Positions 718 through 29,257 of a stretch of DNA of 64,000 nucleotides are shown here, one piece after another. Within the stretch, counting starts at the first letter, position 1. Every line of letters starts with the position of its first letter. A program made the translations under genes and the position numbers. This DNA is from Octopus sinensis (taxonomy: Eukaryota): NCBI RefSeq assembly GCF_006345805.1, contig NC_043003.1:21762001-21826000 (forward strand), given 5' to 3'. The notes beneath the pieces were generated by a model that was not told where the DNA came from, did no database searches, and saw only the letters and a program-made list of their open reading frames with translations.

Positions 718-792
718 TTCCAATTCCTCAAAACTTGTGTTACCATCAGTGATTTTTTTCCCAATCCCAGAATCGAAAGAACTGTAGCGTTC
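718..792 (-). CDS. xylA: xylose isomerase exon 14 (ERYSSFDSGIGKKITDGNTSFEELE), 75 nt
   Basis: Acceptor poly-T-ctacag|, donor GAA|gtaagt. ERY.S...GIG motif. Ends at a donor with no stop, so at least one more exon follows. Confidence 0.95.
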
Positions 793-1799
793 CTGTAGAA
801 AAAAAAAAAAGGTGATATATCATTCATTTAGGGAAAGACTAAGCTACAAAAGTCAGATGTTAAGTATATTTAACAAAGAAGAAAAGCTGAGAGTAAAAGA
901 TTTGCGCATGTTCTGTGATGTAATGATCAGATGTGCGAGGATTCCTGACAGCAAGACAAAGTACTAGAGACAATTTTGAGAAGGCTGTGCGAAATGATAA
1001 AGCCATTACTAACAGGGAAAAGAAAAAGGTATGGAAGTATTATTATAAGAGGTTGTGGTGAACAAAAACAAAATCAAAATCGATCAACATCAATGGAAAT
1101 CGTAGCTGTGATACCATAAGAGAACCATCCGAACGTGGCAATTGCCAGCGCCACCCCGACTGCCTCCATGCCAGTGGCACATAAAAAGCACCATCCAATC
1201 ATGGAGTGGTTGGCGTTAGGAAGGGCATCCAGCCGTAGAAACATTGCCAGATCAGACTGGGCCTGGTGCAGCCTTCTGGCTTCCCAGACCCCAGTTGAAC
1301 CATCCAACCCATGCCAGCATGGAAAGCGGATGCTAAACGATGATGATGGTGATGAATTGTTCATAAGGTGTTGTTACATCATTCACACACAGCCACATGC
1401 AAATGCCTTGCAACGCTGGCGATCATACTGGGTCACCAAAGTTGCAAGGCATTTGTGTGTGGCTGTATGTAGATGATGCAACAATATCTCACAAACATTT
1501 AATAACTTTTTTCATGTGATGTCTGGATGCTGATTGTTCCATAACCTGGCCACTCACAAGAACAAGAAGTTGTGATGCCATGGTTTTAACTTAGCAATTT
1601 GTTGACTTGGTTTTGAGTCTTGCTACAAGGTTGGTGAATGAAGAGAAGATATGGGAGAAAGAGCATCTATTAGGGACCAGCCATTGAAGTTGGTAGCTTT
1701 GTGACTAAGTGTGAGATTAATGGAAAGTCTCTGGAATAGTTGCTGAGATACTGGAAATATTTGGTGAGGTAGGTTGCAAGTTAGTAACTCACATTAACA

Positions 1800-2260
1800 T
1801 TTAGGCAGTATAGGGAGATACCATAGCCAATGACTGGAGTAATAGTAACATTCTAAAATGTCACAAGAGCAAAAGAGATGCACTTGAAGGTGGTAATGAC
1901 AAAAGCATTAAATCGATGGACAAGATTATGGAAGTTATGTAAAGAATTATAAAATTTTCGGAAACATTTTTTCACTCTAAGAGTTGCTAAAGTATGGAAC
2001 AAACTGCTGGCATTAGTTGTTAGTTGTCAGAGCACTGCATCCTTCAAAACTTCCATGCTTCCTGAGATTCGCCAACACTACACCTGATTTTCTCCCCTCC
2101 ATACACACGCAAGCATGTATCTGATTCATACACTGTTCACTTTCCAGACATTTGTACATTACTGCATATGCTTTATACGCACTTTTGACAAGTTGTGATG
2201 CACCCGAGCACTGTATACAATAATTTTATTATTATTATAATTATTATTATTATTATTACA
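1800..2260 (+). mobile_element. CR1/L2-type LINE 3' fragment with (TTA)n tail
   Basis: Degenerate RKHFFTLRV...WNKL coding end plus 3' UTR shared with copies at 7265, 18690 and 57189. Confidence 0.75.
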
Positions 2261-2261
2261 A

Positions 2262-2740
2262 TTGATTAGGAACAAAATTAGCCTTGATGTAATGCAGTTC
2301 AGCTTTGTACCAGGAAGAGGTGCTACTGATGCTTGCTTTTTAGTGAGACAACTGCAACAGTACATAGCTAAAAGTAAACCATTATACCAAATTTTCATTA
2401 ATCTGAAGAAGACCTTCAACAGAGTTCAACACACTGTAGCCTAGAGGTCACTAAAGAAACAAGGGAGTTTGTAAGGTCCATACAAGCCATGCACAGAGAC
2501 ACAGCCAACAAGATGAAACTCAGCAATGAATTCAGTGACAAATTTATTGTGTCAGGAATGGGTCTGTCAGGGCTCAATCCTCAGCTGCCTCTTGTTTGAT
2601 AAAGTTATCCAAGCTCTAACAGGAAGTTACGACCAGCTACCTTCTGAGCCAATGAACAAGTTCTTTAAGAAAAATCTGTAGAAGATTAAGTGCAGAGTTT
2701 CCAAATGAAGGACCTCAAAGTAAACCTAACAAAGACTGAG
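2262..2740 (+). mobile_element. Degenerate RTE-clade LINE reverse transcriptase fragment
   Basis: ISLDVMQFSFVPGRGATDACFLVRQLQQYIAKSKPLY parallels the RT of the 50860-53668 element (VSLDEMQFGFVPGKSTTDAIFLVRQLQEKYLAKDKPLY). Confidence 0.85.
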
Positions 2741-3785
2741 TTCAGCATTACCCTTTAAAACTACTATCACAACATTCATGTAACAATGGATGGCACTAGA
2801 TGTATATAGGAAGAGCATCCAGCTGTAGAAACTCTGCCAGATCAAGATTGGAGCCTGGTGCAGCCATCTGGTTCACCAGCCCTCAGTCAAAATCGTCCAA
2901 CCCATGCTAGCATGGAAAGCGGACGTTAAACGATGATGATGATAGAAATATATTATCCTCGTGCCATCACCCTTCTTTACTGCTAATCATCACTTTCTTT
3001 CTTCTGTTTATTAACATTATCACTCTTTATTAACATTCACCACACTTTCTCATACCATCACTAACTTGCTCTCATCATTATCCATTTTTATGGCTTTCTT
3101 TCAGTCCTTTACACACACACACACACACACACACACTATCTCTCACACACATTACGCTTTCTTCTAATACTGTGTTCACATACATTGTTCTCCCTCCTTC
3201 CCATTACTCTCCGCATTTCCTTTTCCCCCTATAACACTGCACTCATTGCATTTCTAGTCAGTCTCCTTATCAACAAGCAAAGTGTCTCTTCTATTACTAT
3301 TTCCTTTGCCAACCTATTGCTCTTATCACTGTTCCTCTATTATACTCATACTTAGCCTTCAATTCACCTTTTGGCTTTGTTTGCCTTGAATGAATGAAGT
3401 CTTTTATAGAGTAGAGAGGACATTTTAGCCTTCCCAAGAGCAAAACAACTTCTCTAGTCCTGGTGCAAGGAGGAGGCAGAGGAGGAGGAGGAAAGTAGAG
3501 CAAATCCAGGAAACAACACTCCTTGGAAGTGCAAAGAGTCTTAGTTCATGAGAAATGAACAGCTGCTTTACTAATGACACTTCCAGCAACAAATTGTGTA
3601 TGTTAGATATAATAATAGTAATAACTATAATGATACAGCTTTTAAATCATCTAAAATCAGCTTTAAAATTCATCTTCTGCTCTTTTTAACCATACACACA
3701 CATAATTGAATACTTGTGATTCAAGTATAATATAGCAAAAAACACTAAAATGGTAAGCAAGTGATAGCATAGAATTAATCCTTAC

Positions 3786-3865
3786 CTTAACTGCAGCGGG
3801 AATAACACCATCAGACAGAATTTTGGCAGCCACTAATAAACCTTGAGCAAATGTATCCATGGCTC
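3786..3865 (-). CDS. xylA: xylose isomerase exon 13 (G-AMDTFAQGLLVAAKILSDGVIPAAVK), 80 nt
   Basis: Acceptor cttattcag|, donor AAG|gtaagg. GMD.FA.GL..A motif. Confidence 0.96.
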
Positions 3866-5227
3866 CTGAATAAGTCAAAAACAAGGTTTTATTTTTCGTT
3901 TTGGGATTTGGTTTACAAGATTCTTTATATGAGTTCGTGTGTTGAAGCATATTCTGTTGTGTCTGGGGAGAGTCATTTTCTTTTTGTGCCTTATAACATA
4001 ACACACTCACTAGTAAAATTTCCACTTTTTATTATTCTTATTTTCCTAAAATTTTCGTTGCATCTTGCAACCTTTCCAATAGTTTTGACTCTGAGAGTCA
4101 AAACTATTGAAAAGTGGAAATTTTACTGGTGAGTGTGTTATAAAGCACAAAAAGAAAATGACTCTTCCCAGACACAACAGAAGGTTTTATTTGTTTCAAA
4201 TCTCTGAGCGAGAGATATACAGTAACAGTACCAAATAGTAAAGTTTATATGACAACAGAATGTGGCAGTCCTATAAGGTAACATCGTCCTTTACAGGACT
4301 GCCACATTTTGTTGGCATATAAACTTTACTGAGGCGTTATTTGTTTTTGTGTGCTAAGTATTGTAAAAATTCATGAGTAATATGTTATCATGGTATAAAA
4401 CACAATGTGATTTATCTTCTCAGCTTTTATTTGTTTCAGTCATTGGACCGTGGCCATGCTGGGACACTGCTTTGAAGGGTTTAGTTGACCAAATCAATCC
4501 CAATATTTATTTTTTCAAACCTAATATTTTATAATATTGGTTTTTTTTTGCTGAACCACTAAACCACAAGGATGTAAACAAACTAACACTAGTTGCCAAG
4601 TAGTGGCAGTGGTGCTCAAACACAAAGATATACACATATATATATGATGGGCTTCTTTTTATTTTCTGTCTACCAAATCCACTCACAAAGTTTTGGTTGG
4701 TTTGGAGCTATAGAAGACACTTACCCAGAGTGCCACACAGTGGAAATGAAAGGGATCTAAATTATCTTATAAAAAAAAATATCATGCCATGTATAAAACG
4801 CAGTATTGCACAACTGCATATAGAGTTTGTGCAAGCAAGTCTCTTTTCTTAAAACCAAAGTTTATTGAAAGGAAAACCCACTGACTTGGGATCAATACAG
4901 CTTGGTACAAATGTCTTTGATACAAAGATTCAGAACAAATACTGCAAGGCACCTTGTTTGACCCTCTAGCAATACCTATTTCTTTACTACCCACAAGGGG
5001 CTAAACACAGAGGGGACAAACAAGGACAGACAAACGGATTAAGTCGATTATATCGACCCCAGTGTGTAACTGGTAAAATAACAAAAGACAGGATTGAATG
5101 ACAAGAAACAACTGTAAATCTCTTTTTCTCTCTCTCTACCTTCGTTAATAAGACAATATTGATATTGTATAGTCAGATGGTAACAAAGAACTTGAAAAAT
5201 GTCCAGATCAAAGACAAGCATACACAC

Positions 5228-5330
5228 CAATGTGAGAAATGAACATATCATTCAAATGTGTCGACTCTCGGCGTACTTTACAATCAAAGTTCAGACCTCC
5301 AGGCTGGAGTCCACCTTGCTGCAAGACTGT
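5228..5330 (-). CDS. xylA: xylose isomerase exon 12 ([35 protein letters not shown]), 103 nt
   Basis: Acceptor tatttcag|, donor G|gtgtgt. GGLNFD.KVRRES motif. Confidence 0.96.
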
Positions 5331-5629
5331 CTGAAATATAATGAGAAATCATTAGAAAAATTATAATGAACAAAATTATTGAAAATATGCTACGATATTA
5401 CAATCTGAGCTTTCTCTTATAATTCCATTTACATTCCATTCACATATCAGCAGAGGTATGGTGGAATGATTGAGTAGTTTGCTTCCCAATCATGTGGTTT
5501 TGGATTCAATCTGATTGTGTAACACCTTAAACAAGTCTCTTCTACTATAGCCCCAGGCTGACCAGAAGCATCATCCAGCAGTAGAAAAAAATCTACCTCA
5601 ACAAATTCTGTCTGACCCATGTAGACATT

Positions 5630-6402
5630 AAAATGATAAATGATTAGCCATGCTACATGGCTGTGACAGCTGAGAGCATGCATAGGTTTGAAAGAAATGA
5701 AGCTAGTATGCTTTGCTGGATGTGTAATATCAGTGTGCATACATGACAAAGTGTAAGCGCCCTGAGAGAAAAGTTGGACATAAGAAGCATCAGATGTAGT
5801 GTGCAAGAGAGACGACTGTGCTGGTATGGCCATGTATTGCATATAGATGAGGACAGGTGTGAAGAAGTGTCACACCCTAAAAGTAGAGGGAACATGTGGA
5901 AGTGGTAGACCCAGGAAGACATGGAATGAGGTGATGAAGCACGACCTTCAAATGTTGGGCCTCACAGAGGCTATGACAAGCAACCGAGAACTTTGGAGAT
6001 ATGCTGTGCTTGAGAAGACCCGGAAAGCCAAGTGAGATTGTAGCTGTGGCCCATTTAAAAGTACCCTTCAATCATCAGGTAAAATGCTGTGCTTCAGAAG
6101 ACCTGTTGAGTCAAGTGAAATTGTAGTCATGGCTGATACCAGTGCCACCTGACTGGCATCCATGCTGGTGGCACGTAAAAAGCACCATTCAAGTGTGGTT
6201 GATACCAATGCCGCCTGACTTGCCCTTTCCCCCTTGCCAGTGACATGTAAAAAACGTCCACTACACTTTTGGAGTGGTTGCCATTAGGAAGGGCATCCAG
6301 ATCAGATTGAAGTCTGGTGCAGCCTCCTGGCTTGCCAGTCCTCAGTCAAACCGTCCAGCCCATGCCAGCATGGAAAGCGGACATTAAATGATGGTGATGA
6401 TA
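5630..6402 (+). mobile_element. RTE LINE 3' fragment plus its (GAT)n-tailed 3' repeat
   Basis: VKKCHTLKVEGTCGSGRPRKTWNEVMKHDLQMLGLTEAMT matches the RTE C-terminus; followed by the catggaaagcggacattaaatgatg tail. Confidence 0.85.
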
Positions 6403-6709
6403 TGTATCATCATCATTTAATGTCCATTTTCCATGTTGACATACACAGATATATATATACACACACACATGACAGGCTTCTTTCAGTATTCAAATTCAAC
6501 TAACAAGGCTTTGGTTAGCCTGGAACTATAGTAACAAGACACTTGCCTAAAGTTCCACACAGTGGGATTGAACCCAAAACCATACAGATGGGAAGCAATG
6601 TCCGTGCCTAAAACCAAATTATGGACCAATTTCACTGCTATATCATAGACCTTGTGTAAAGAAGACAAAAAACAAAACAAATTCAATTTCAAACAAGTCC
6701 GGTGCTTAC

Positions 6710-6815
6710 TTTCATAACAAATGCTGTGTTTTTAACATCCATTGGAAATTCATCTGTATCCCAACCAAGTTCAGGGGATCCTGTGTTGGAATCAATTGAG
6801 CCCAGCATACCAAAA
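6710..6815 (-). CDS. xylA: xylose isomerase exon 11 ([36 protein letters not shown]), 106 nt
   Basis: Acceptor atttgcag|, donor AAA|gtaagc. GSID.N and GWDTD motifs. Confidence 0.97.
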
Positions 6816-7264
6816 CTGCAAATAAGAAAGACAGAAGAAAACACAAGAATGTGTAGTATTATTTCTGATATCATCATCATTTAACGTCCATTACACATGC
6901 TGGCATGGGTTGGATGGTTCAACAGGAGCTAGTGAACAAGAGGACTGCAGCAAATTAGTGTCTGCTTTAGCATGGTTTCTACAGCTGAATACCTTTCTTA
7001 ATACCAACCATTTTACAGTTTGTAGTGAGAACTTTTTATGTGATACTGTTATTAGTGAGGTCACCAGGTAGCTTGCAAGACAAGACTCATATCAGCTGAG
7101 TGAGGAGTAGTATTGAGGGAGTTGGCCATATGCCAGTTGATGAGAGGTAAAGTATGACAGAGAGACAGGGACAGATGTTTGACTGTAAGGAATGTTCAGT
7201 TGGCTATTCTCCACACGTATATTGTTGTTGTTTAGCTCCAGATTAGCTCTAAATCAAGCAAATT

Positions 7265-7590
7265 TAATAATAATAATAATGAAATTATTGTATACAGTGC
7301 TCAGGTGCACCACAACTTGTCAAAAGTGCATATAAAGCATATGCAGTAATGTACAAATGTCAGGAAAGTGAACAGTGTACGAGTCAGATACATGCCTGCG
7401 TGTGTGTATGGAGGGGAGAAAATCAGGTGTAGTGTTGGTGAATCTCAGGAAGCATGGAAGTTTTGAAGGATGTAGTGCTCCGACAACTAACAGCTGATGC
7501 CGGCAGTTTGTTCCATGCTTCAGCAACTTTTAGCATGAAAAAATGTTTCTGAAAGTCATGGGAGGTGTTTGACAGCTTCACAGTCATAAT
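7265..7590 (-). mobile_element. CR1/L2-type LINE 3' fragment
   Basis: Reverse complement of the family at 1800-2260; ends in (AAT)n. Confidence 0.75.
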
Positions 7591-8066
7591 CTAAAGATTG
7601 TATTTATTTTTTCAGAAATAGCATGACTGTGAGGTGCAGGTATGGAAGTTTGTCTTGCAACCATGTGGTTCCAGATTCAATCTCATTGTGTGGCATCTTC
7701 TTGAGCAAGTATCTTCTATTTGGCCTATTCACTCATTGTGAGTGGAAACTGAGGAAGTGTGTTGTGTTGTGTGTGTGTATGTGTGTTTACATGCTGATTG
7801 TAAACAAAGTCACCTTTCACACAAAAACGGCCTCATTTGTCTGATGGGCAGACAGACAGAGGCATTGTGATGGTTTCTGCACAGTTCCATCTACCATATT
7901 TTATTCATAAGCTATTGGTCAATCTGATGTTATGGTAGAAGGCACTCGCTGAAAGTATCCTTGCTGTAGGATTGAACCTGTGATCATTTAACTGGGAAGC
8001 AAACTTGTTAACCACACAGCCATCAGATGATCAAATAAAAAGAAGTGGAAAATAAAAGTTACTTAC

Positions 8067-8137
8067 GATGAAGCCATGGCAACATCATGATCGTAACAAT
8101 GTCCGGCTAATGTTGTGTGATTTGGTTCAATGTTGAG
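8067..8137 (-). CDS. xylA: xylose isomerase exon 10 (LNIEPNHTTLAGHCYDHDVAMAS), 71 nt
   Basis: Acceptor cttcctcag|, donor TC|gtaagt. NIE.NH metal-ligand motif. Confidence 0.97.
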
Positions 8138-9548
8138 CTGAGGAAGAAAATATAAAAAGAAACTTAAAAAGTAATTTTCTACTCAGATATAATTTTTTCT
8201 CAGTTATTTTTTACTTGTTTAAGTCATTAATCAACGGCCATGCTGGGGTACTACATTGAAGGGTTTAGTTGAAAACGTCTACCCGAACACTTGTTTTTAT
8301 GTCTCATGCTTTTTCTGTCAGTCTCTTTTTTAAACCTCTAAGAGTTGTGGGACATAAACAAACCAACATTGGTTGTCAAGAGGTGGGGTGATGACAAATA
8401 CAGAGACACACACAGACATATATATACACGCAACCAGACATGCAAGCTTCCACACAGTTTCCATCTACCAAATTCATTCACAAGCTACTGGTCAGCCTGA
8501 GGCTATAGTAGAAGACATTTGTCCAAGGCATTGTGCAGCAAGACTGAACCTGGAACCACATAGTTGGAAACTGAGCTTTTTAACCACATAGCCATGCTTG
8601 CACTGAGTCAATAACGAATTAATCATATCTACACAATGCTTCTAATAGCTTAAAATCTGAGACAAATGCAGACATGAAAGATGATGATGATGATGATGAT
8701 GATAATAACTGTCATATCTTTAAATTAGATTCTTTCATCTAAATATTAGTAGCAGGAGATGTCTAATCATCTAACTTTGACTGAGTGAAAAATGTTGTGG
8801 CTTAGCCCCAGCTCAGCCCTGGTAACATAGACCTATGATTAATGACATTCCAGCTGTGACCTTCCCGTCTTTATTTTTAGACAGTGTAACAAATATATCC
8901 TTTACTTTAAGACAGCAGGTATTCTAACGATTTCATCAGTTCACCATCCTAGATTGATATTTCATAAAGGTAAAAAACAAAGACAACCATAACAGGGTTT
9001 GAGATCAGAATATATGTGTAAGGGTGTATACCACACTGCATTTCACCTGATGTTCAAATCATCATCATCATCATCATTGTTTAACGTTCGTTTTCCATGC
9101 TAGCATGGGTTGGACAGTTTGACCGGGGTCTGGGAAGCCAGGAGGCTGTGCCAGGCTCCAGTGTTTGCTAATTTGCCACCTAATTTTAGATTATTTCAGT
9201 GAGGCATTAAATACTTGCAGAATATTGGACTTGGTTCATCTTCATCATCGTTTAATGTCTGTTTTCCATGCTGGCATGGGTTGGACGGTTTGACAGGAGC
9301 TGGCCAGCCAGAGAATCACCCAGTTCATGAAATAAGTGGTTGGTGTTAGGAAGGGCATCCAGTCATAGAAACCATACCAAAGCTGACTCTGAAGCATGAT
9401 AAGGACTGCATCATTGGATCCTGTCAAACTGTTCAGTCCATGCCAGCATGAAACATGGATGTTAATGATGATGATGACTGGAGTGAGATACCAAAGGAAT
9501 GAGAAAGAAAAGCAGGCAGTTAATATTGTATTGTGTTTCCTTTATTAC

Positions 9549-9604
9549 CTTAAAATGTTTTTCCAATCCAAAATGCTTCAAAAATGCTATCACAGTCATG
9601 GCAT
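9549..9604 (-). CDS. xylA: xylose isomerase exon 9 (D-AMTVIAFLKHFGLEKHFK), 56 nt
   Basis: Acceptor ttttgcag|, donor AAG|gtaata. Phase fits both neighbours. Confidence 0.93.
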
Positions 9605-9874
9605 CTGCAAAAGTTAACGATACATTGATATAATCATCTACTTTCAATAAATTTCTTTCTATAATAGTACCACTAGGTGTAATTAATCTAGGACACAATT
9701 TAAAAATGAATTGTATTACTCTTCCTTTTCTACAACTGGGATCTCTTCCTGTTATTAAACATCACATGTTTTCAAACAAGGTAATATTTCCCACAGCCCT
9801 TTGAATATGAACATAGACATGTTTTCATGAGAGAATGTAGACAAATGACACTGCTTGTATGATGGTAACATACC

Positions 9875-10290
9875 TATTTCTTTACTACCCACAAGGGGCT
9901 AAACACAGAAGGGACAAACAAGGACAGACAAATAGATTAAGTCGATTATATCGACCCCAGTGCGTGACTGGTACTTATTTAATCAACCCTGAAAGGATGA
10001 AAGGCAAAGTCGACCTCGGTGGAATTTTAACTCACAACGTAACGGCAGACGAAATACCTATTTCTTTACTACCCACAAGGGGCTAAACACTGAAGGGACA
10101 AACAAGGACAGACAAACGGATTAAGTCGATTATATCGACCCCAGTGCGTGACTGGTACTTATTTAATCGACCCTGAAAGGATGAAAGGCAAAGTCGACCT
10201 CAGCGGAATTTGAACTCCGAATGTAGCAGCAGACGAAATACCGCTAAGCATTTCGCCCGGCACGCTAACGTTTCTGCTAGCTTACCACCT
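9875..10290 (-). mobile_element. tRNA-derived SINE (family B), head-to-tail dimer with 16-bp TSD
   Basis: A/B-box-like head. 184-bp internal duplication. TSD atgatggtaacatacc at 9859-9874 and 10291-10306. Confidence 0.85.
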
Positions 10291-10609
10291 ATGATGGTAA
10301 CATACCTTTACAGTTAGCATGCAGTATCAAGAATAGGAGGTATGAAAACACACACAGAAAACAGTCATCTTTCAATTTCTTTCAACCAAATCCACTCATA
10401 AGGCTTTGGTCAGCCCAGGACTATTGTAGAAGACACTTCTCCAAAGTGTCACACAGTGGGAGTGAACATAAAACAAATAAAAAATTTTGGTTGGACATGG
10501 TGTATTTAATATTAAAGGGTTAAATGAAGTTAAAAGCCTGTGTGTGTTTTTGAAAGGCTAATAATGGTCTGTATGTGTCTTCCATGCTGTAAAGTAAAAG
10601 AACACTCAC

Positions 10610-10693
10610 CATAATCATATTGGTGTGAAGTTGGTTCCTTAGGTTTAGGCTCCAAAAGAAACTGGCATTTTAGGCCTATTTTTTCCTTGTAAG
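10610..10693 (-). CDS. xylA: xylose isomerase exon 8 ([28 protein letters not shown]), 84 nt
   Basis: Acceptor aattttag|, donor G|gtgagt. EPKPKEP motif (metal-ligand Glu and catalytic Lys). Confidence 0.97.
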
Positions 10694-11199
10694 CTAAAAT
10701 TACAAAATGGGTAAAGTTTCATATAAAACAACATCAGAATAATGAATTTTCCTCGAAAATAGCTCAATGAATTATTGTTGTTGTTATTGTCCTACATTCT
10801 TGGAATTATGAAAGAGAAGAAGATCAGCTACTAGGAATGAAAAAAAAGAAGTTAATTTGAGAGGAATTTAAATTCAGAGTGAAGGTATATAACTATATAC
10901 AGCTAAAAATTTTATCAAAAATTACTGTTATCTGTCTTACTAATAATGAATATATTAATGTAAAAAATTAAAAAAACAATATTAATGTAAGAAATCAATA
11001 ATAATAAATATACTTTTACAATCTAATGAGTGAATAGACAAGAATTAATTAAAGAACTTAATACAAGTTATACAAATAATTTAGTGAAGTATAAACCAGT
11101 GTGCAAAGTGACGCCTTCCAGAAAAACCTGTTTTGTAAGATCCTTCCTACTTGTCAAAGAAAAATCAATTTTATAAATTTTCAACTATAAAGGGCTCTT

Positions 11200-11710
11200 T
11201 AAGTAATGAATAACTATCCGTCCATCTTTGCACACTGTTCCTGGGAGGGTAATGGGGATAGAGTCCTCAGGCACCTCCTCCATAAACTCCTACCAGAATC
11301 AACTGTCTTTACACTTTCTGACTGGATTCCCAAGCATGAACTGAGACTATGGATATTATTCAACCATCTCATGCTTGGTCTACCCTTAGATTTCCTGCCA
11401 GTCATTTTGGCTTCAAGGATCCATTTTGCAATTCTTTCCTGCAACATTTTAATCACATGTCCATAGTACTGAAGCTGTGACTTCTCAAGGCTGAGATGTA
11501 ACAACTTGGCCTGGAGAGAATCACTGATCTTCAAAGCTACATAATGTTACTCCAGAGATCCTTCAAAAGAACCCCATTTCAGTTGCAAGTATTCATGATC
11601 ATACACCTTTGGTCATTATCCAACATTCACGACCATAGGTGAGGATAGGCATGTAAACTGAACTGAAGATAGTGAAGTTGGCTTTTTACTAACCTCTCCT
11701 CTTCTCAGGA
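11200..11710 (-). mobile_element. RTE/BovB-like LINE 3' fragment
   Basis: QLQYYGHV...ILEAKMTGRKSKGRPSMRWLNNI is typical of the RTE-BovB C-terminal region. Confidence 0.8.
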
Positions 11711-12076: not shown

Positions 12077-12172
12077 CAACAGCCATTTTGAAGAAATTTG
12101 CCATGTGTGTCAGTTCAGCAAGAATATTAGTGTTGAGTAATGTCTGGAATCCTTCTCGTCCACCCCAGAATA
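12077..12172 (-). CDS. xylA: xylose isomerase exon 7 ([32 protein letters not shown]), 96 nt
   Basis: Acceptor ttttaaag|, donor G|gtaatt. WGGREG motif. Confidence 0.97.
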
Positions 12173-13373: not shown

Positions 13374-13512
13374 AAGAGAGGAAGGAAGAGAGGGAAAAAA
13401 GATACTCCAAGAAAGAACTTGAAACTGTCTTTTTTTTCCATACAACTGAGATTTCTTGTTTACAAATGTACCTTCTAATACTGTTAAATATAATCATGCA
13501 CACTTCACCTAC

Positions 13513-13622
13513 CAAAGTTTTCAGCTCCCAGCTTCTTGGCAATTTCTAATCCTTTTTTCACTTGAGCAGCAGCATAAGCAAAAACATGGGCATTGGGACT
13601 AGTGCTTGCACCAGTCATATAC
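13513..13622 (-). CDS. xylA: xylose isomerase exon 6 ([36 protein letters not shown]), 110 nt
   Basis: Acceptor cattttag|, donor G|gtaggt. Hallmark GA.T....[11 protein letters not shown]. Confidence 0.97.
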
Positions 13623-14007: not shown

Positions 14008-14038
<31 letters not shown>

Positions 14039-15561: not shown

Positions 15562-15699
15562 CGTGGATGCGCAAACAAGTTGCATGTAGCCCAGAGCAGT
15601 TTCACACCGGTTTTTTTCTGAAGTTCCTGAGCAAGATCTGTTAGCTCATCTAAGTTTTTATTTGTTTCCTCCAAAGTAGAACCTTCAGGAGCAATGTCT
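15562..15699 (-). CDS. xylA: xylose isomerase exon 5 (DIAPEGSTLEETNKNLD...KLLWATCNLFAHP-R), 138 nt
   Basis: Acceptor tgaatag|, donor CG|gtaagt. Lies within ORF 15558..15965. Confidence 0.97.
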
Positions 15700-17138: not shown

Positions 17139-17280
17139 CTGTCATGGAAACACCAGTGTTTTATTCCCAGCTTGCTGAAAAATTCGAACGCTGCCCTTAA
17201 TCTTCGCTTAGCGTTTGCTATTGTGTTGCTGTTGTCATCCCATGGTCGGAATAAGGTTGGAAATCCAAAAGGATCCGCTC
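17139..17280 (-). CDS. xylA: xylose isomerase exon 4 (ADPFGFPTLFRPWD...AAFEFFSKLGIKHWCFHD-R), 142 nt
   Basis: Acceptor ttttactag|, donor AG|gtataa. Contains the catalytic His motif FHD. Confidence 0.97.
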
Positions 17281-18689: not shown

Positions 18690-18960
18690 GGAAGTTTCCT
18701 TTCACACTCAGAGCTGCTGAAGCATGGAACAAACTACCTACATCAGTTGTTAGTTGTCAAGACATTGCATCCTTTAAAACCACCATTCTTCCTGAAATTC
18801 GTGAACACTACACCTGATATCACCCCTCCATATGCATGCACACATGTATATCATGACTTAAAACACTGTTCTTTCCTGACTTTTGTACATAATTCTATGT
18901 ACTATGCATGCACCTTTAATGAGTTATAGTGCACCTGGGCACTATACACAATAATTTTCT
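18690..18960 (+). mobile_element. CR1/L2-type LINE 3' fragment
   Basis: Same family as 1800-2260. Confidence 0.7.
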
Positions 18961-18992
18961 TCTTCTTCTTCTTCTTATTATTATTATTATTA

Positions 18993-19460
18993 TATGTTTG
19001 ACTTTTGCTTTACATTTGTACAAGTTGGCTCCAAGTCTCACCCAGAGACCTCAAGAGACAACAAATTGGAAGTTTATGTTGGTATTATGCCTAGGGTGCC
19101 ATATATTTTGTTTTGTACTTAGTGTTGTATTAGTGAATGTCTAAAAAACCATACGAAAATTATGTTTGTTTTAAAACTTGAGATTACATAGAAAGTATTT
19201 TGCGTAGGATATGAGCAGTTCCCATGAGCACTATCTTTTGAATTTCTGCCATTTTGGGGTTTCCTGGTATCTGAATTAGGTAGCAATCAGCCCTTTTTGC
19301 TATCATTCCCAGGGCACCAATGACAACAGGTATTGTTTTAGTCTTCAGGTTCCACATTTTGCTGATTTCTATTTCAAGGTCTTTATATTTGCTCAGTTTT
19401 TGGTAGGTCTTGATAGATACGTTTATATCGATTGGGACAGTCATATCAATGAGGAGGTAT
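18993..19460 (-). mobile_element. 5'-truncated R4/Dong-like non-LTR retrotransposon (restriction-like endonuclease C-terminus plus 3' UTR)
   Basis: LIDMTVPID.NVSIK..QKLSKYKDLEIEISKMW...IPVVIGALG...IQKIVLMGTAHILRK; flanked at both ends by (TAA/AAT)n. Confidence 0.8.
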
Positions 19461-19554
19461 TATTATTATTATGATCAAAACAGATTTAGGAATTTTAAGA
19501 CACGTTAGAATTAGTTAAGAAACTTTGTTCAGAATTATATACTCCCATACTGAC

Positions 19555-19627
19555 CTGTTCCACGAAATGTGTGCCAGAAGCAGACAGAAAACCTCAGCCA
19601 CTCTTCCATTGTTTTTCCATAAACAAC
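19555..19627 (-). CDS. xylA: xylose isomerase exon 3 ([25 protein letters not shown]), 73 nt
   Basis: Acceptor ttttaatag|, donor G|gtcagt. Hallmark GKTM...LRF....WHTF. Confidence 0.96.
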
Positions 19628-19929
19628 CTATTAAAATTAAAATATATATTTATGTTATTCTTTTACTTGTTTCAGTCATTGGATTGCAGCCATGCTGGGA
19701 TTACATTCATTAAATATTGATTCATTTTAAATTAGTTTGTAGTAATTTTTGTCTGGGGAGGTACGTTTAATCAAATCAAGCCTACTATATTACAATACCA
19801 CACTATCTCCACATCTTTGATGTGTTTTATTTTTCCCTACATCCTGTGATGCACCTGGACACATCATCAATGATATTTCCTGGGGTCATTAGGAGTTTTG
19901 GGTTTTTCAACATCAGATACCTTCATCCA

Positions 19930-20230
19930 AGCAATTAGCACTACCTTGATAGCACTTCCCTTTCAAGGACTCACACCTCTTGATCTACAGCCACCTTGAG
20001 GCAACCTTGGCTACCTCTACAGCTAACCTGATGGCCTTTTGTCTACTTGCCCCTGTGGTACCAAGCATGATGTAGGCTCTGAAGAGGGACTCCCCTGAAA
20101 ACCCTAGATGGAATCAAACCTCGCTTGCCACCCTTTCCTTTGGCATAACTGCACTTGCTCAGCATATTTCCTCCTCCTCTTCTCATTGGTCTCCAGTAGA
20201 AGAGGTTAGTCCACCATCAATAATTACCCA
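19930..20230 (-). mobile_element. Degenerate Hero/NeSL-type RLE LINE 3' fragment
   Basis: Frameshifted CQRKGWQARF...GFSGESLFRAYIMLGTTGASRQKAIRLAVEVAKVASRWL*IKR. Confidence 0.55.
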
Positions 20231-21522
20231 TGCCAACATTTTATTGTATATCACACAATTTCAGGGTCATATCTGAAGCCTAAACTAGGGATAACCCTAT
20301 TTTTTTTCATCCCTAAAATACGGATAACCATATTTTATGACAAGAGCAACAAAATACTGACTAGTGAAAAACAACAAAAACAAAGAAAACTAATGTTACT
20401 TTTGAGATTCAAGTATGGAAGACAACTTCAGATATGGAAGGCCAGAACTAGACAAAATTAGATTTATTTGGTCAGTTTAAGGTAAGAATCCCAGTCAAGA
20501 ACATTGTGTTTCTATTATTATTGTTGACTTCATCTAGAAGTTTATTGTTGTTGAACACAATCTCTTGGTACTGGTTTGACCTCTCTATCTTTATGTTAAA
20601 GATAAGGAGGGTCACCTCATGTGCTTGGATATACAATGCATTATTTAATACAACAACTTACTATTTTAGTGAAGTTAGCTCTCAGTATTCTTTAAATATT
20701 TATCATAAGTGACAGCTACCCATTAGTTCTAATGGTGGTGGTTGCTTGGTTGCATGTTAACTCATATAATCTATGACCAAAGGTATCCTAACTGTAACCG
20801 TCCCGTCTTTTTAGAGGTAATCATCACTTTTTAACGTCCATGTTTTGGACAAAGTTTATTAAGGTAGATTTTCTACAGCTGGATGCCCTTCCTGTCACCA
20901 GCCCTCACTGTTTTCAAGCAAAGTAATATTTCCCCGTAGCCAGCTATGTTTATGCAGAATATTGGAAATGAATGATACAGCTTGTATGACAATGAAATAC
21001 ACATCTATTATGTTGTCAAAGGAAGGTGATGTTAACAGACACACACTCAAACACACACACATACATGATGAACTTTGTCCAGTTTCCATCTACCAAATCT
21101 ACTCACAAGGCATAGGTTGGCCTAGGGACATGAAAGAATACACTTGCCAAAGGTGCCCTCAATGGGACTGAACCTGAAACCATGTGGTCACAAAGCAAGC
21201 TTCTTAACCACACGGCCATGCCTGTGCCTATAAAAATAGAATAAAATTTGTACAAAAGTTCTTTGCAATCTAAAGTAGTTTATGATGATAATGTGAAAAA
21301 GTTTTGCTTTGTGACAGAATATGTGAACTATGATTTCTTGAGTACATGTAAACCTGAAAAATTATCAAGATAATTTTGTCAAGTATCTCATGGCTCCTAA
21401 AAATAATTTGAATTTAGAAAAAAAAGATTAGATTATCTGAAGTATCCACTTTAAATAGTGCATGGCGTCAATGAACAAATTCTGTTTTTGCACATTTTGA
21501 ATATGCACAGAATGGGTACATC

Positions 21523-21569
<47 letters not shown>

Positions 21570-22495
21570 AAGTAACAAACTAAGGAAAGGAATCCTTCAA
21601 AGTGGTGCGTAAAACATCCAATTCATTGGTACATCAGTTGAATACCACGTAAATATGGGTATAATATGGTGACTCAGGCACTTTGGGCATTCGGACTTAG
21701 CTTGAATATAAATTTAGTAAAGTGAACATGTATTTGCAAGCTCATTTTAATTTCTGCCAACACTTCAAGTATGTAATTGAAGCCCATAACTTGGGCTCCT
21801 TTCATTGAGCCTGGTCACAGTTAATTTTTTTTTTTGTTCAGCATCTGGCAGTCATTTTAGAGATACCCTGTGTCAAAAAATATCATTTGTAGCAGACGTT
21901 CTCTCGACATTGCTCACACATGCCTGACTTGGGCTCAGAAGTTACAGCCTAAGTTGTTATTTATATTTATAAAAATTAAAAGTAATTCAAATGCAATGTT
22001 TTCTTCAAACAATAAATTTCTATAGAGATTAGGATTTAAATTCCAATCTATAAAAAGTTTACGTTCTACAATTTTCTTAAAGGAATGAAAAATTATCCAA
22101 CAACTCAGGCTAAGACAAATGAGATTGCAAGATGTAAAAGACGAACTAGCATCTCTTGTCAAGAGTACAAGCGACAACCAGATTGCTGATGTTTGTTGTG
22201 CACTATGCTGTCTTTATTTGATAACAGTTATTCTGTGCATCTGTGCGTAATGACCAGTTGTGTTTTGCAGGGTAGCTTTATTTTTACCCTGAATTTAGAA
22301 ATGGAGAAAGACATAGTGCTAGATATAAAAAAAAAAAGCCATTTGGGGCTATAAATATTGTGGAAAAACATCAAATTCTTCAAGCAGGCATATGTCTTAT
22401 GCAAAATCTGTGAAGAGACCAAGTGACGAAATCTGTGATGAGCCCAAGTGAAGCTGATGACCTGACGTCGTCTCTGGTGTATATATATATATATA

Positions 22496-23583
22496 TTAGG
22501 TCATCTCATAGATAATGGGATTTTTTATACTTTATTTATCTTTCGAAATTAAGATAAACAAAGTTCTTTTTTAATCTAAAATATACTCTCCCTCATTTTC
22601 TACACTGCTCTTCCATCTATCTTGTAGACTTGCAAGGCCCCTCTTGCCAAAATTCACTTGTCCATGACGTTTCTCCAGTACTGTTCTGAACTTGTCTACA
22701 GAATTCATATTCTTTCTGTCTAAATGATTTTGAAGACTGCAGAATAAATGATAATCACATGGGGCAATGTCCAACGAATACGGTGGGTGGGGCATCGTTT
22801 CCCATTCAAAATGCTCCAGCTTTAGGAATGTCGTCCTCGCTGTATGTGGCCGAGCATTATCCTGATGGAATAACACCTCTCAGTTTGGAACCAAAGATGG
22901 CCATTTTTCTTCTAGCACTGACTTAAGCTGCTAAAGCTGCTCACAGTAGATCTCCTTTGTTATCATTTGGTTTGGATTTAAAAGTTCAAAGTGGACTAAA
23001 CCTTTCATATCCCACCAAACAGATAACAACACCTGAAGTGCAATTAGACTCAGATAGTTTGTGAGGAACCCAATTTGCTGAATTTACCGATGGCACGCAG
23101 GTGTCGATGAATGGTCGAATGATCAAATCCAAGCTTCCCTGCTAGTTCCTCAACAGTTATGATGGGATTTTGTTCCGCCAGGGTTTGCAGAATGTCCTTG
23201 TCAAGCTCCATGGATCTTCCAGGACGAGGCTCATCTTCTAGGTTGTAGTTTCGGGCTCAGAATTTCTGGAACTACCATTGACACTGGCTTATGCTTATTG
23301 TCCAATCCCCATAAACTGTATTAATACCCCTCGCACTTTCTGTTGCGTTTTTGCGTTTATTGAACTCATAAAGCAAAATATGTTGAATATGCTCCTTTGT
23401 CACTTCCATTATAGCTTTGAAAAAATAATTGCTAAAATTGAACTGCACTCTTCAAAACTTGCACTAAGAATAAGTACTACCTGATTTTATAGTAAGTTGA
23501 TGCAGGTAGTTTATCTCATCCTCCTCTGACTTTTAGTTCATGCAGTTGAAAAAAAAAACCACATTGTTTATGGGATGACCCAA
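22496..23583 (-). mobile_element. Mariner (Tc1/mariner) element, both TIRs, decayed transposase
   Basis: TA|ttaggtcatctcatagataatggga and its imperfect inverse ..acattgtttatgggatgacccaa|TA. Remnants of LEDEPRPGR, (W)VPHKL, HQDNARPH and HPPYSLDIAPCDYHLF. Confidence 0.9.
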
Positions 23584-23654
23584 TATATATATATTTGTGG
23601 ATTTGCACAGATGGGAGATGACATTATGCTGGGCAAATGTTTTGTAGAATTTAC

Positions 23655-23731
23655 CTTTGTTGGGTTGTAGTGTTTAAACACCATAGTTTCAGCAGGTCCA
23701 GCATCAGGTTGGAATGGTATTTTTTCAATAC
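23655..23731 (-). CDS. xylA: xylose isomerase exon 2 (G-IEKIPFQPDAGPAETMVFKHYNPTK), 77 nt
   Basis: Acceptor tatttcag|, donor AAG|gtaaat. Corresponds to the KI.Y.....F..YN segment. Confidence 0.92.
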
Positions 23732-24178
23732 CTGAAATATGATAAAAAATATATTTTTAAATAAAAATCAAAAAATTCTCAGGCAAATATAACATTCTTA
23801 AACATGGGATATCAAGTCGGTGCAGAAGTAAGTGAGTAAGATATGTTATTTTCTGCTGACTAGTTTAGAGGCAAAAGTTCCTTCATTCAAATCCTGTCAT
23901 GGCCAGTGTAACAATTTATCCATCCAAGACTCATAAAATATAACTCCCAGATTAACAAAATAAAAGAAGGATGAGCCAAGCAAGTGATACCAAACAGACA
24001 GGTGCTTAACATAGCAGTAAAATCGTTTTGGCTTTCAATTTCACCCCAGTCTGTTGGGGAACAAAACTGTAATACATTACCCTATTTATCAGCAGAGAAG
24101 TGTCTCACATAAAAACTATGAATATGCTTAAGAACCATGAACCAAAAATCTGGTCTTGATAATGAAATAACTGTGGGT

Positions 24179-24398
24179 GAACCCTTTTGGTACCATATTT
24201 TCCTTAAACTACTCTGCCATTGTTTTAACTAAGTTTGAAAAAAGTGAAATACTTAGTAAAATAATTTTGTCATTATTAAGCAAGTGTTTAGAACACAAAC
24301 TAACATGAAATTTTGATTTAAATTAAGTCATTTAAAAATGAAATTTGCATCACAGAACTAGGGGCCATCTCTGGTTGGTTGGTATCAACAGGGTTAAG
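24179..24398. mobile_element. Non-autonomous MITE with TTAA/CCC-type ends (piggyBac-like)
   Basis: Degenerate left end aacccttt, right end cagggttaa; related sequence at ~29560-29780. Confidence 0.5.
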
Positions 24399-25679
24399 AG
24401 TGTTGCTATCAAAGTACCCAAGGCTGCCTTGGATTTGATGACAAAAAGTCATTCATAATAAAATGCTAATTTAACATTGAAAACATGCAACATAATTTTA
24501 TGTGAGAATCTTTCATTAGGTTAGGTTCCAAACATCAGTTTAAAATTTTGTTTACTAAATTCTTGATTACTTTCAAAATTAAGTTATAAACACAAGTGGT
24601 ATGAGAGAACATACGAAATGACCATTGTACATTCTCTCATGAAGACAGTGGCTTGAGGAATATGATAAACCAAGTTGAATACATACACTCACACACATGA
24701 AATTCTGACTGCAAAGGTATTTATTGTGTCATTACAAATGTGACATGAAAGAGTTAATTAAGCACAGTAACTTTAATTAATTAGGCACAGTAACTTTAGT
24801 TAATGCAATCAGTTTTAGTATATCACTGAAATAAAATGTTTCATTGCTTGAAAACCAACTCAGTTCCATGAAATGAGTGCAGTACTGGAACCAAAGACTA
24901 GCTGAATTGCATGTAATAAAACAGCTTATTGGTTCAGTCTACAGGATCTAATATGCTATGATATTCAACTCAGTCATGTATGATGACAAAATTGTGATTT
25001 ATCACATAGGCACAAAGTTTCAGTTTTATAGGAAGCAGGGAGATGTGATGTTCATTACTTTCTTTCTCAGATTCTTTATATAATGTGTCTACAGGTGTTA
25101 GCATTCAGGAACCTCCATGTCAAAGATTGAAAATTCATGATTTTCCTTGAGAAAGATACAACAGTGATTTCCCATTGCCTTTGTTCTAGTTCATTTACCG
25201 TTTACTCTGTTAGTTTCCTGCTCACCCAAGCTTACTGTTGAAGCACAAAGACTGATTAATGTGACATCAGGGTATGTTCACACACTGGTGATCCTAATGA
25301 CACATATTTAGGGACCATCCCTCTCATGACATTATACACAGGACTATCTTCTACTATTCAACCAATAACTAGGATCCTTGACAGGTACCACCACTTCAGG
25401 CTAGAGTGAGCCTAAAAATAGTGGTAACTAAGCAGTAACTCCGTACTCCCCTAAAACTTCCAAAATGGAGTCTCATTACTGGCTGCAGTTTAACCCTTTA
25501 GCATTTAAATCAACCATATCTGGCCCAAATGTTCTGTTTTATATTCAAACTGACCAGGTCTGGCCTCTCACACTTACCCTACAATATCATTCTAAAGCTA
25601 AACAATTACATTATCATAATCTCAAAGCTACAAGATAATACATAATTAATTTAAAACAATGCAAATAAATAAGCATTAA

Positions 25680-26870
25680 GCCTCAAGGAGGCAAAGTGGC
25701 TGAGTTCCTTTCGAGTGTTGGGCCTCAAGGAGACTGAGTTCCTCTGGAGCATTGGGCCTAAAGGCAGCAAAGTGGCTGAGTTCCTTTCGAGCATTGGGCC
25801 TCAAGGAGACTGAGTTCCTCTGGAGCATTGGGCCTAAAGGCAGCAAAGTGGCTGAGTTCCTTTCGAGCATTGGGCCTCAAGGAGACTGAGTTCCTCTGGA
25901 GCATTGGGCCTAAAGGCAGCAAAGTGGCTGAGTTTCTTTCGAGCATTGGGCCTCAAGGAGACTGAGTTCCTCTGGAGCATTGGGCCTAAAGGCAGCAAAG
26001 TGGCTGAGTTCCTTTCGAGCATTGGGCCTCAAGGAGACTGAGTTCCTCTGGAGCATTGGGCCTAAAGGCAGCAAAGTGGCTGAGTTCCTTTCGAGCATTG
26101 GGCCTCAAGGAGACTGAGTTCCTCTGGAGCATTGGGCCTAAAGGCAGCAAAGTGGCTGAGTTCCTTTCGAGCATTGGGCCTCAAGGAGACTGAGTTCCTC
26201 TGGAGCATTGGGCCTAAAGGCAGCAAAGTGGCTGAGTTCTTTCGAGCATTGGGCCTCAAGGAGACTGAGTTCCTCTGGAGCATTGGGCCTAAAGGCAGCA
26301 AAGTGGCTGAGTTCCTTCGAGCATTGGGCCTCAAGGAGACTGAGTTCCTCTGGAGCATTGGGCCTAAAGGCAGCAAAGTGGCTGAGTTCCTTTCGAGCAT
26401 TGGGCCTCAAGGAGACTGAGTTCCTCTGGAGCATTGGGCCTAAAGGCAGCAAAGTGGCTGAGTTCCTTTCAAGCATTGGGCCTCAAGGAGACTGAGTTCC
26501 TCTGGAGCATTGGGCCTAAAGGCAGCAAAGTGGCTGAGTTCCTTTCGAGCATTGGGCCTCAAGGAGACTGAGTTCCTCTGGAGCATTGGGCCTAAAGGCA
26601 GCAAAGTGGCTGAGTTCCTTTCGAGCATTGGGCCTCAAGGAGACTGAGTTCCTCTGGAGCATTGGGCCTAAAGGCAGCAAAGTGGCTGAGTTCCTTTCGA
26701 GCATTGGGCCTCAAGGAGACTGAGTTCCTCTGGAGCATTGGGCCTAAAGGCAGCAAAGTGGCTGAGTTCCTTTCGAGCATTGGGCCTCAAGGAGACTGAG
26801 TTCCTCTGGAGCATTGGGCCTAAAGGCAGCAAAGTGGCTGAGTTTCTTTCGAGTGTTGGGCCTCACGGAG
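25680..26870 (+). repeat. 76-bp minisatellite, about 15 near-identical units, in xylA intron 1
   Basis: Unit gggcctcaaggagactgagttcctctggagcattgggcctaaaggcagcaaagtggctgagttcctttcgagcatt. Starts step by 76 from 25720 (two 75-bp units at 26176 and 26251). Confidence 0.97.
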
Positions 26871-27154
26871 GCAATGACTGAGACTTTTGGCATTATGTCA
26901 TGCTTGAGAAGACCCATCAAGCCAAGGAAAATCGCAGTCATGGCAGATATGGGTGTCACACAAATAGGCCCCAGTGCCAGTGACATGTAAAAGCACTCAT
27001 TACACTCTCGGAGTGGTTGGCGTTAGGAAGGGCATCGAGCCATAGAAAACCATGCCAAATCATTTGGAGTCTGGTGCAGCCTTCAGCTTACCAGCCCTAG
27101 TCAAACCGTCCAACCCATGCCAACATGAACAACAGACGTTAAATGATGATGATG
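26855..27154 (+). mobile_element. RTE-tail-derived, (GAT)n-ending repeat (family C); representative copy
   Basis: gggcctcacggaggcaatgact...gagaagaccc...gtggttggcgttaggaagggcatc...acgttaaatgatgatgatg. Many copies in both orientations across the window (e.g. 1130, 2795, 6873, 9060, 45230, 50230, 61690, 63595). Confidence 0.8.
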
Positions 27155-29172
27155 AATCTAAATGCTAAAGGATAAATGTCTTTCACAGGACATTACAAAA
27201 ACAATTAGTGATGTAAGAAAACCAGTTCTGATTGAGAACTGAAAACATAGTTACAGACTTGAACACAGAACAATGAAATGTCTTCTGTAGGTCTCTCCAA
27301 AAACCTAATACAAGCCTCGTATAACATGACCCCTTTATGTTCTTTGATAATGAACCCTGAGACTTTATGAGAGAAAAGGATTAGAGTAGCTCCTAAGTTT
27401 TCGTTACAAATCTTAAAAAACAAAAGAAAAAGGAACAAAGAAACTTTTATACATCTGGACGATTGAAAAACGATCTGGGGTTCCTAACAATTTTTTTAAC
27501 AGAAAAATTAATGAAATCCATTATAAATGTGAAAAAAAAATTAATGATCCGTAATTAAGTGCGAGTTGTCTACCTTTAGGTTAAATAGCTAACCCTGACA
27601 TTTACAGGCAATTTGTAACGTAAACAAAGTGACATTTAATGACTAACAAGAGATACAAAACCGGGTGATTTGCCGACGATTCTAAGTACTTGTCATTACC
27701 AACAACATGAATTTGCATATTTTTTAAAGTTCACCATCTCATTGAGAAGTTATGTTTAACCAGACGTCAACCCCGACTTGGCAACCCTACAATCAAAGGT
27801 GGTCCAGTCAGACCAAAACAGTCTTTTTTTTAATGAGATTATACTGCCCAATGTATTTCTTATTTAAAACAGTACGAATATGATTTGAGGATAATTTGGC
27901 TGCTATTTCTTGCAGATCGACAGAATATGTATAATAGGGGTGAAGGACCCACCATCAACATGGAAATAACCCTCAAATTAAATTCTCTTAAAATCTATAT
28001 AAAAAGACCTTAAGACAAAAACAGTAATTTAACATACGTTTCATAGCAAGTAAAGATAAAATTAAAGATCCGCTATTTTACTCAGTACAAATGGACCATA
28101 ACAAGTTCTTATGCACCCGAAATCTACTCCGGGTGCTAACAATGTTCACTACTCTTGGCGTAGAGACACCGAAGATGTTTCAGAAACGAATGTTAAAAGT
28201 GGGTGGTTATTACATCTACATAATTAAAGATGGAATTTAGAGATCTTATTTTAAAGTCGCTGCGGTTAGGATTGAAGGAGTAAAACAAGTTTAGTTAAAG
28301 GCGACCATTACCATCTATCTTCTTTTAATTGAAGATGTATAGACAACAAAATTTAACGACTACGAATGGTGGATTAAAAGAACCGTGGGAAAATGCTGGT
28401 AGTTTAATAGCTCCAGAATTTACGTTGTGCGTGCAAATCACGCCAGGATCAACTTTGTCTTCCATATTTCCTGGGCCGGTAAAATAAAGTGCTGCGAATG
28501 ATTTGATATTTGTACGAAGCATCCTAGATATAAATGTAATTATAGCACAAAGCGAGAAGACGAAACTAGGTCGACAGTTGGATATTTAATTAAATTAAAT
28601 AATTATTATAGAGAACAGAATTACTGAGGCGTGATGCTAATGCCCTTCCGAATAGCACAAATAAAAACAATAATAAAGCAATTTCTGAAATTAGGTACTA
28701 GCATGGCATGGGATAAAAATTAAAAAGAAACTATACTGCCAACGTTTACGGCTTTTGATGCGTTTTGCAAGGCCGTCTTAACAGCGTTAAAGGTTCGTGG
28801 ACAACTCAGCGCACTGGGCCTTATTTATTTATTTATTGACAGCAAGCTACAGCATACACAAAATAAAGTTAGACCTCCTTGAGCTGTGAGGTCTCGGACA
28901 ACTGTCCAGGTGCCCGTGTCTAAAGATGGGTACTGGCTTTAGGAATATTTAAAAAAAGAATCAGAAACTATTTGTTAAAGTATATGGAAACAAACAAACT
29001 GAGAATTGCTATAAGTACATTACGATAATTGAAAATCATTTATAAATATAAGAAATCAATGAAATATTACAAAGAAACATGAGAATCATAACGGGTTGAG
29101 TGCAATAAATGCTAAGAGTATTTAAAATTTACAGTATAAAAACACAAAAAACTTCGATAAAAATCATATTAC

Positions 29173-29257
29173 CAGGGAAGAAGACTGCATCGGGTTTATC
29201 ATAGCTCTCAGAGCAAATTGATTTTTTATCGGCGCTTGTTGGTGCGAAAGAAGACAT
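29173..29257 (-). CDS. xylA: xylose isomerase exon 1 (MSSFAPTSADKKSICSESYDKPDAVFFP-G), 85 nt
   Basis: ATG at 29257-29255. Ends ..FFP G|gtaata, matching the YF-P/G start of XI. Phase 1 fits exon 2. Confidence 0.85.

Follow-up and report, generated by a model that had tools for sequence, protein, structure and literature searches.

A 64,000-nucleotide stretch of Octopus sinensis DNA (NCBI RefSeq assembly GCF_006345805.1, contig NC_043003.1, forward-strand positions 21,762,001 to 21,826,000; hereafter, the window) appears, with a probability of about 0.93 judged from its sequence, to carry a functional octopus orthologue of the metazoan gene for class II D-xylose isomerase (XI; EC 5.3.1.5), passed down by vertical inheritance and comprising 15 exons, 14 of which lie in the window. 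The gene was first proposed from the letters of the window alone (the original prediction), where it was described as hidden. That description does not hold, as the orthologue in Octopus bimaculoides already has a public annotation as xylose isomerase. XI is likewise annotated in animals from sponge to fish, and the result is a good annotation of an already known, housekeeping-type metabolic gene, with small weight as a discovery. Its useful yield is a clean XI gene model for the window, together with proof of an animal, non-contaminant origin.

Gene model and enzyme class

A motif scan first located WDTD, NIEPNH, SIDSN, EPKP and NFDCK between 5.2 and 10.7 kb, all on the minus strand. Searching with E. 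coli XylA (MG1655) by tblastn yielded 11 ordered minus-strand pieces running from 19627 to 3762 and a further, weak piece at 23684, and exon boundaries were set by reading frames and splice signals. The resulting model comprises 14 minus-strand exons, from the start codon ATG at 29257 to the end of exon 14 at 718, which splice in frame into 1296 stop-free nucleotides encoding 432 amino acids. From 5' to 3', the exons measure 85, 77, 73, 142, 138, 110, 96, 84, 56, 71, 106, 103, 80 and 75 nt. Each of the 27 splice signals that the window contains, 14 GT donors and 13 AG acceptors, is canonical, and the AG acceptors of exons 2-14 are preceded by pyrimidine-rich tracts. The 14 exons of 56-142 nt, the 432 residues and the limits of 718 and 29257 given in the original prediction were all reproduced exactly. 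The gene as a whole is indeed invisible to the open reading frame (ORF) track, since the six-frame ORF list holds only fragments that overlap single exons.

The spliced protein belongs to the class II XIs, as first proposed. It matches the equivalog model TIGR02630 (NCBIfam xylose_isom_A) with 622.7 bits against a cutoff of 533.25 (E = 3e-187), despite the lack of the last 31 residues, with residues 26-432 aligned to profile positions 1-407 of 435. In contrast, the score on the class I model TIGR02631 (xylA_Arthro) is 122.1 bits, below the cutoff of 447. The Pfam match is to the XI-like TIM barrel. The solved structures that match best are those of class II XIs (1a0d, 1a0e and 1a0c; E = 1e-145 to 1e-150 over residues 24-432), whereas class I structures match at only ~1e-27. 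For the 97%-identical O. bimaculoides protein, the AlphaFold model reaches a pLDDT of 90.4, falling below 50 in residues 1-13 only, and superimposes on class II structures with TM-scores of 0.94-0.96 (rmsd 1.8-1.9 A), compared with ~0.8 for class I. This model bears out the class II architecture, with the extra N-terminal segment relative to class I, the (beta/alpha)8 barrel and the C-terminal helical arm. The O. bimaculoides orthologue carries PF27526 (XylA2_C), and the last 31 residues of the arm fall outside the window.

Orthology and selection

The top protein match is 'xylose isomerase [Octopus bimaculoides]' (P0001), a protein of 463 residues that is 97% identical over 432. Its locus on chromosome CM046607.1 (L002) has 15 exons, the first 14 of which are identical in size to those of the window, and the two loci are collinear through introns and flanks, with ~84-94% nucleotide identity in most collinear blocks. 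The protein identity and the collinear locus bear out the cephalopod host assumed in the original prediction. Argonauta follows at 89% identity, and then orthologues of 66-82% across animal phyla, namely other molluscs, annelids, brachiopods, nemerteans, cnidarians, sponges, echinoderms, hemichordates, amphioxus, tunicates, crustaceans, one nematode and ray-finned fish. In total, the protein search returned hundreds of animal XI orthologues.

The coding sequence is 97.0% identical to that of O. bimaculoides at the nucleotide level, a higher value than the ~84-94% of most collinear intron blocks, with 39 differences, 13 of them amino-acid-changing. The corresponding dN of 0.013 and dS of 0.100 give a dN/dS of 0.13, which indicates that the gene is under purifying selection. 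By this divergence the source of the window is an Octopus species closely related to O. bimaculoides but distinct from it.

Active site and proposed chemistry

Alignment with E. coli XylA places the catalytic residues at His124, Asp127 and Lys257 (E. coli His101, Asp104 and Lys234). The metal ligands are Glu255, Glu291, His294, Asp319, Asp330, Asp332 and Asp362, equivalent to E. coli positions 232, 268, 271, 296, 307, 309 and 339. The two-metal site, in which seven ligands supply four to each metal with one Glu shared, is fully kept in the octopus XI. The FHD, EPKP, NIEPNH, SIDSN, WDTDEF and NFDCK motifs recognised in the original prediction are all present, as are the ten catalytic and metal-binding residues.

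Some of these motifs had been singled out as local variants, a view that stands for only one of them. Of the best 120 matches, nearly all from animals, 99 carry NIEPNH, 87 the Ser of SIDSN and 69 the Cys of NFDCK, so that these three are common in animal XIs. WDTDEF is restricted to the three cephalopod sequences in the same set and is octopod-specific.

By homology with the well-studied class II enzymes and their established mechanism, the protein would fold into a (beta/alpha)8 barrel with a C-terminal helical arm, and His124 and Asp127 would open the pyranose ring of the sugar. The extended sugar would then be bound across two divalent metals (Mg2+, Mn2+ or Co2+), metal 1 being held by Glu255, Glu291, Asp319 and Asp362, and metal 2 by Glu291, His294, Asp330 and Asp332. 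The metals and Lys257 would drive a C2-to-C1 hydride shift that converts D-xylose to D-xylulose, which xylulokinase would pass into the pentose phosphate pathway.

Activity and role in animals

Activity of the octopus XI can be inferred with good reason from the dN/dS of 0.13 and from the Ciona XI, which two XI engineering papers list among the enzymes functional in S. cerevisiae and which is cited as active there at 30 C (PMC4436767, PMC5591498). At the protein level, two XI peptides have been reported from the ink proteome of O. vulgaris, one of 10 residues and the other LGAENFVFWGGR (PMC10142993). Both occur exactly in the window model, the former in exon 3 and the latter across the exon 6/7 junction. 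In addition, XI protein was found in two scallop hepatopancreas proteomes and was the top-scoring protein in one of them.

Several points weigh against reading the locus as a functional XI gene. The two peptides from ink, which the authors attributed to a Crassostrea entry, are conserved among molluscs; they are consistent with the gene yet unspecific (PMC10142993). Ciona is the only animal whose XI is reported as assayed in the literature found, and there the result is cited second-hand. Furthermore, exon 15 and the stop codon lie beyond the window, so that intactness can be read for 14 exons only, and the gene model for this locus is a prediction from sequence.

The alternative that survives best is an intact enzyme whose main job is other than xylose catabolism, acting on another aldose/ketose pair (glucose/fructose) or in a second role tied to the N-terminal MSSFAP segment, although we consider it improbable. 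Animal XIs do differ from those of bacteria next to the metal ligands, with Pro292 in NIEPNH (Ala in bacteria), Ser320 in SIDSN and Cys363 in NFDCK. MSSFAP is kept without change from sponges to tunicates, with a basic K/R cluster after it in several phyla. The octopus is, moreover, a predator with little xylan in its diet, and no paper on the physiological role of an animal XI was found. Against this, the Ciona XI, which is 68-69% identical and bears the same substitutions, is listed as functional in xylose-utilising yeast, and the catalytic residues of the octopus XI are all canonical. The abundance of XI beside glycosidases in the scallop digestive gland also fits sugar catabolism. A D-xylose isomerase remains the preferred reading of the octopus protein. 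A role in xylose salvage (or in glucose/fructose interconversion), as suggested in the original prediction, stands as a hypothesis, a literature search for a physiological study of an animal XI, or of the xylose source it would serve (the diet or turnover of the animal's own glycans), having returned none. The function of the enzyme in animals, and in a predator above all, on which the papers searched are silent, poses a modest question.

Residues 1-25, the N-terminal extension (exon 1, window 29257-29183), are hydrophilic (the highest Kyte-Doolittle mean over any 11 residues is 0.87) and are predicted to be disordered in the AlphaFold model of the O. bimaculoides orthologue. The extension of ~25 residues was rightly described at the outset as not being a signal peptide, but it is not a local feature, as the MSSFAP with which it begins is conserved between sponge and tunicate. 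This start is found in 59 of the 120 best animal orthologues, including those of sponge, coral, amphioxus and tunicate, and in cnidarians, amphioxus, hemichordate and sponge it is followed by a K/R-rich stretch resembling a nuclear localisation signal. The whole extension is absent from fish XIs, and MSSFAP is absent from the bacterial and algal XIs compared. It is conceivable, if rather unlikely, that MSSFAP and its linker form a localisation or regulatory module and that animal XI has an undescribed compartment or role. If so, that role could be, for example, the direct salvage of xylose from proteoglycan linkers and other xylosylated glycans. The extension is the only feature of the octopus XI left without explanation, and its conservation, on which the papers searched are likewise silent, poses a modest question.

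Intactness of the locus and the final exon

A pseudogene, or a copy in decay that merely looks intact over 14 exons, is a very improbable reading of the locus. The last exon cannot be seen in the window, and a search of positions 1-717 with the O. bimaculoides C-terminus gave chance matches only. Its absence is, however, explained by the window edge. Window positions 293-1 align to L002 34149-34443, and exon 15 of O. bimaculoides lies there at 35891-35986 (96 nt, encoding 31 residues and the stop). Because the two loci are collinear, exon 15 is placed by sequence ~1.45 kb past the left edge of the window, cut off by the window and not lost. A decaying copy is also at odds with 1296 nt free of stops and frameshifts, with 27 of 27 canonical splice signals and with the dN/dS of 0.13 relative to O. 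bimaculoides.

Age of the gene and shared introns

Annotated XI proteins were mapped onto their own genomic loci, and their introns were placed on the protein alignment. Both position and phase are common to all 14 octopus introns and those of coral (Orbicella) and abalone (Haliotis), to 13 of the 14 in sponge (Corticium) and in amphioxus, which has one extra intron, and to 12 of the 14 in cod, which has the same extra intron as amphioxus. Because intron positions and phases are common across animal phyla, sponge included, the intron-rich XI gene is dated, on gene structure, at least to the animal ancestor, and its 14-intron structure has been almost frozen since then.

A maximum-likelihood phylogeny, which had been suggested as a check on the original prediction, mirrors the species tree and supports the animal XI clade at 100/99. 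Sponge branches first, followed by coral and bilaterians; within molluscs the order is abalone, Argonauta, and then O. bimaculoides and the window as sisters. The sister group of the animals (alga or bacteria) is left without resolution. In the XI of the green alga Monoraphidium minutum (P0121), one of 17 introns coincides with an animal intron (residue 126, phase 2). The introns had originally been taken to argue for an old eukaryotic gene, and introns and tree support an old, vertical descent back to the animal ancestor. A still older origin does not follow from them: as a pan-eukaryotic relic, the introns are unsupported, given the single coincidence with the alga.

Contamination from bacteria or a symbiont, or a recent horizontal transfer into cephalopods, is a negligible prospect and is refuted. 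Although XI is chiefly known as a bacterial enzyme and its top matches among solved structures come from bacteria, the gene is interrupted by fourteen spliceosomal introns with octopus repeats inside, its flanks are collinear with O. bimaculoides chromosome CM046607.1, it is present in other molluscs, its introns are common to coral, abalone, sponge, amphioxus and cod, and the animal clade is monophyletic, follows the species tree and is not nested inside a bacterial clade. The original prediction had likewise discounted both possibilities.

Exon map

All exons lie on the minus strand. Exon 1 (29173-29257; 85 nt, the same size as in O. bimaculoides) encodes MSSFAPTSADKKSICSESYDKPDAVFFP, with the hydrophilic N-terminal extension, and the first base of G29, and ends at the donor gtaatatg. 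Exon 2 (23655-23731; 77 nt) encodes residues 29-54 (GIEKIPFQPDAGPAETMVFKHYNPTK) between the acceptor atcatatttcag and the donor gtaaattc. Residues 55-79 are encoded by exon 3 (19555-19627; 73 nt), which holds the 10-residue peptide known from O. vulgaris ink. Exon 4 (17139-17280; 142 nt; residues 79-126) ends in CFHD and contributes the catalytic His124, whose partner Asp127 is supplied by exon 5 (15562-15699; 138 nt; residues 126-172). Exon 6 (13513-13622; 110 nt) covers residues 172-209, and exon 7 (12077-12172; 96 nt) continues with residues 209-241 (VFWGGREG...), the junction between the two falling inside the published peptide.

The metal site is distributed over the following exons. Exon 8 (10610-10693; 84 nt; residues 241-269) holds EPKP, with Glu255 for metal 1 and Lys257, and is followed by exon 9 (9549-9604; 56 nt; residues 269-287). 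NIEPNH, with Glu291 for both metals and His294 for metal 2, lies in exon 10 (8067-8137; 71 nt; residues 288-311). Exon 11 (6710-6815; 106 nt; residues 311-346) carries Asp319 of SIDSN for metal 1 and Asp330 and Asp332 of WDTDEF for metal 2, while Asp362 of NFDCK, for metal 1, is encoded by exon 12 (5228-5330; 103 nt; residues 347-381). The C-terminal helical domain begins in exon 13 (3786-3865; 80 nt; residues 381-407). Exon 14 (718-792; 75 nt) encodes residues 408-432 (ERYSSFDSGIGKKITDGNTSFEELE), with the acceptor ttttttctacag and the donor gtaagtat, and positions 1-717 form the 5' part of intron 14, exon 15 lying beyond the window.

Repeats and neighbouring genes

Intron 1 contains a 76-bp tandem satellite (25672-26870; 15.8 copies, 98% matches), which yields a ladder of overlapping ORFs, mostly of ~62 amino acids. 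A ~2.1-kb stretch around it (~24893-27025) has no counterpart at the orthologous O. bimaculoides site. In intron 8 (9870-10242), a 184-bp unit is tandemly duplicated with 93% identity. Dispersed SINE-like elements of ~200-300 bp are present in many copies and both orientations, for instance at 63880-63598, 61946-61688, 50514-50236, 45453-45226, 6401-6139 and 1352-1131, and every copy finds its matches at the same four or five sites of the O. bimaculoides locus, with identities of 72-88%. ARAGORN found no tRNA-like gene in the window, and Rfam gave nothing there.

Farther from the gene, the minus strand carries two adjacent non-LTR retrotransposon ORFs (50879-53085), one of 442 amino acids with a reverse transcriptase domain (PF00078, E = 4e-24) and one of 298 with a weak PHD-like zinc finger. 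They lie in the GC-richest part of the window (0.44-0.49), and a GC-rich tandem repeat with a 61-bp unit (and periods of 122 and 182 bp) adjoins their 3' end at 50408-50831. A minus-strand ORF of 110 amino acids at 61170-61502 gives a borderline match to the endonuclease/exonuclease/phosphatase family PF03372 (23.5 bits against a cutoff of 24.5) and probably represents what is left of the endonuclease of a further LINE.

Upstream of XI in O. bimaculoides, in head-to-head orientation, is a mucolipin/TRPML-like gene (PF21381, PF08016). Collinearity places its predicted start at a plus-strand ATG at 35298 in the window (MELERFEHNGSFQESFR, followed by a GT donor), ~6.0 kb from the XI start codon. 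A tblastx comparison of the upstream region with the O. bimaculoides flank gave no clear coding exons of the TRPML-like gene, so that the position of its start codon is all that could be mapped. Neighbours were also noted in other animals. NCBI gives some fish XIs (P0068, P0089) the name 'E3 ubiquitin-protein ligase RNF144B isoform', and in cod (locus L006) an IBR-domain gene lies immediately upstream of XI; the RNF144B names are probably derived from read-through or fusion gene models. Just upstream of the coral XI in Orbicella faveolata (L003, 1-675) lies another gene, which gives a faint XI-like TIM-barrel match and may be a tandem relative.

Comparison with known xylose isomerases

The class I XIs (Streptomyces rubiginosus and the Arthrobacter 'glucose isomerase') have the same barrel, two-metal site and hydride-shift chemistry as would be expected of the octopus XI, but they are only 21-24% identical to it, superimpose with a TM-score of ~0.8 and lack the class II N-terminal segment. 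The bacterial class II XIs are considerably closer. Those of Geobacillus stearothermophilus (1A0D), Thermotoga neapolitana (1A0E) and Thermoanaerobacterium (1A0C) are 51-53% identical to the octopus XI and agree with it in fold (TM 0.94-0.96), in the same ten catalytic and metal-binding residues and in the class II N-terminal segment; E. coli XylA aligns with it over the full length. Unlike the octopus gene, the bacterial class II genes have neither introns nor the 25-residue MSSFAP extension. The bacterial XIs compared carry NIEANH, DAN, WDTDQF or WDTDEF, and NFDAK, whereas the octopus has NIEPNH, DSN, WDTDEF and NFDCK.

Among eukaryotes, the best non-animal representative is the XI of Monoraphidium minutum, which is 53% identical and has FHDRDIAPEG and WHTFRG in common with animals, but bears a hydrophobic, signal-like N-terminus where animals have MSSFAP. 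The Ciona intestinalis XI (P0103/P0111), at 68-69% identity, has MSSFAP, NIEPNH, DSN, NFDCK and all catalytic residues as in the octopus, and differs in WDTDQF (octopus WDTDEF) and in the linker after MSSFAP. The O. bimaculoides XI is the same at all residues checked, and its 13 amino acid differences are all conservative. The two octopus genes differ in intron 1, which is 5441 nt in the window and 2843 nt in O. bimaculoides, mostly because of the ~2.1-kb insert with the satellite, and in exon 15, which is readable only in O. bimaculoides.

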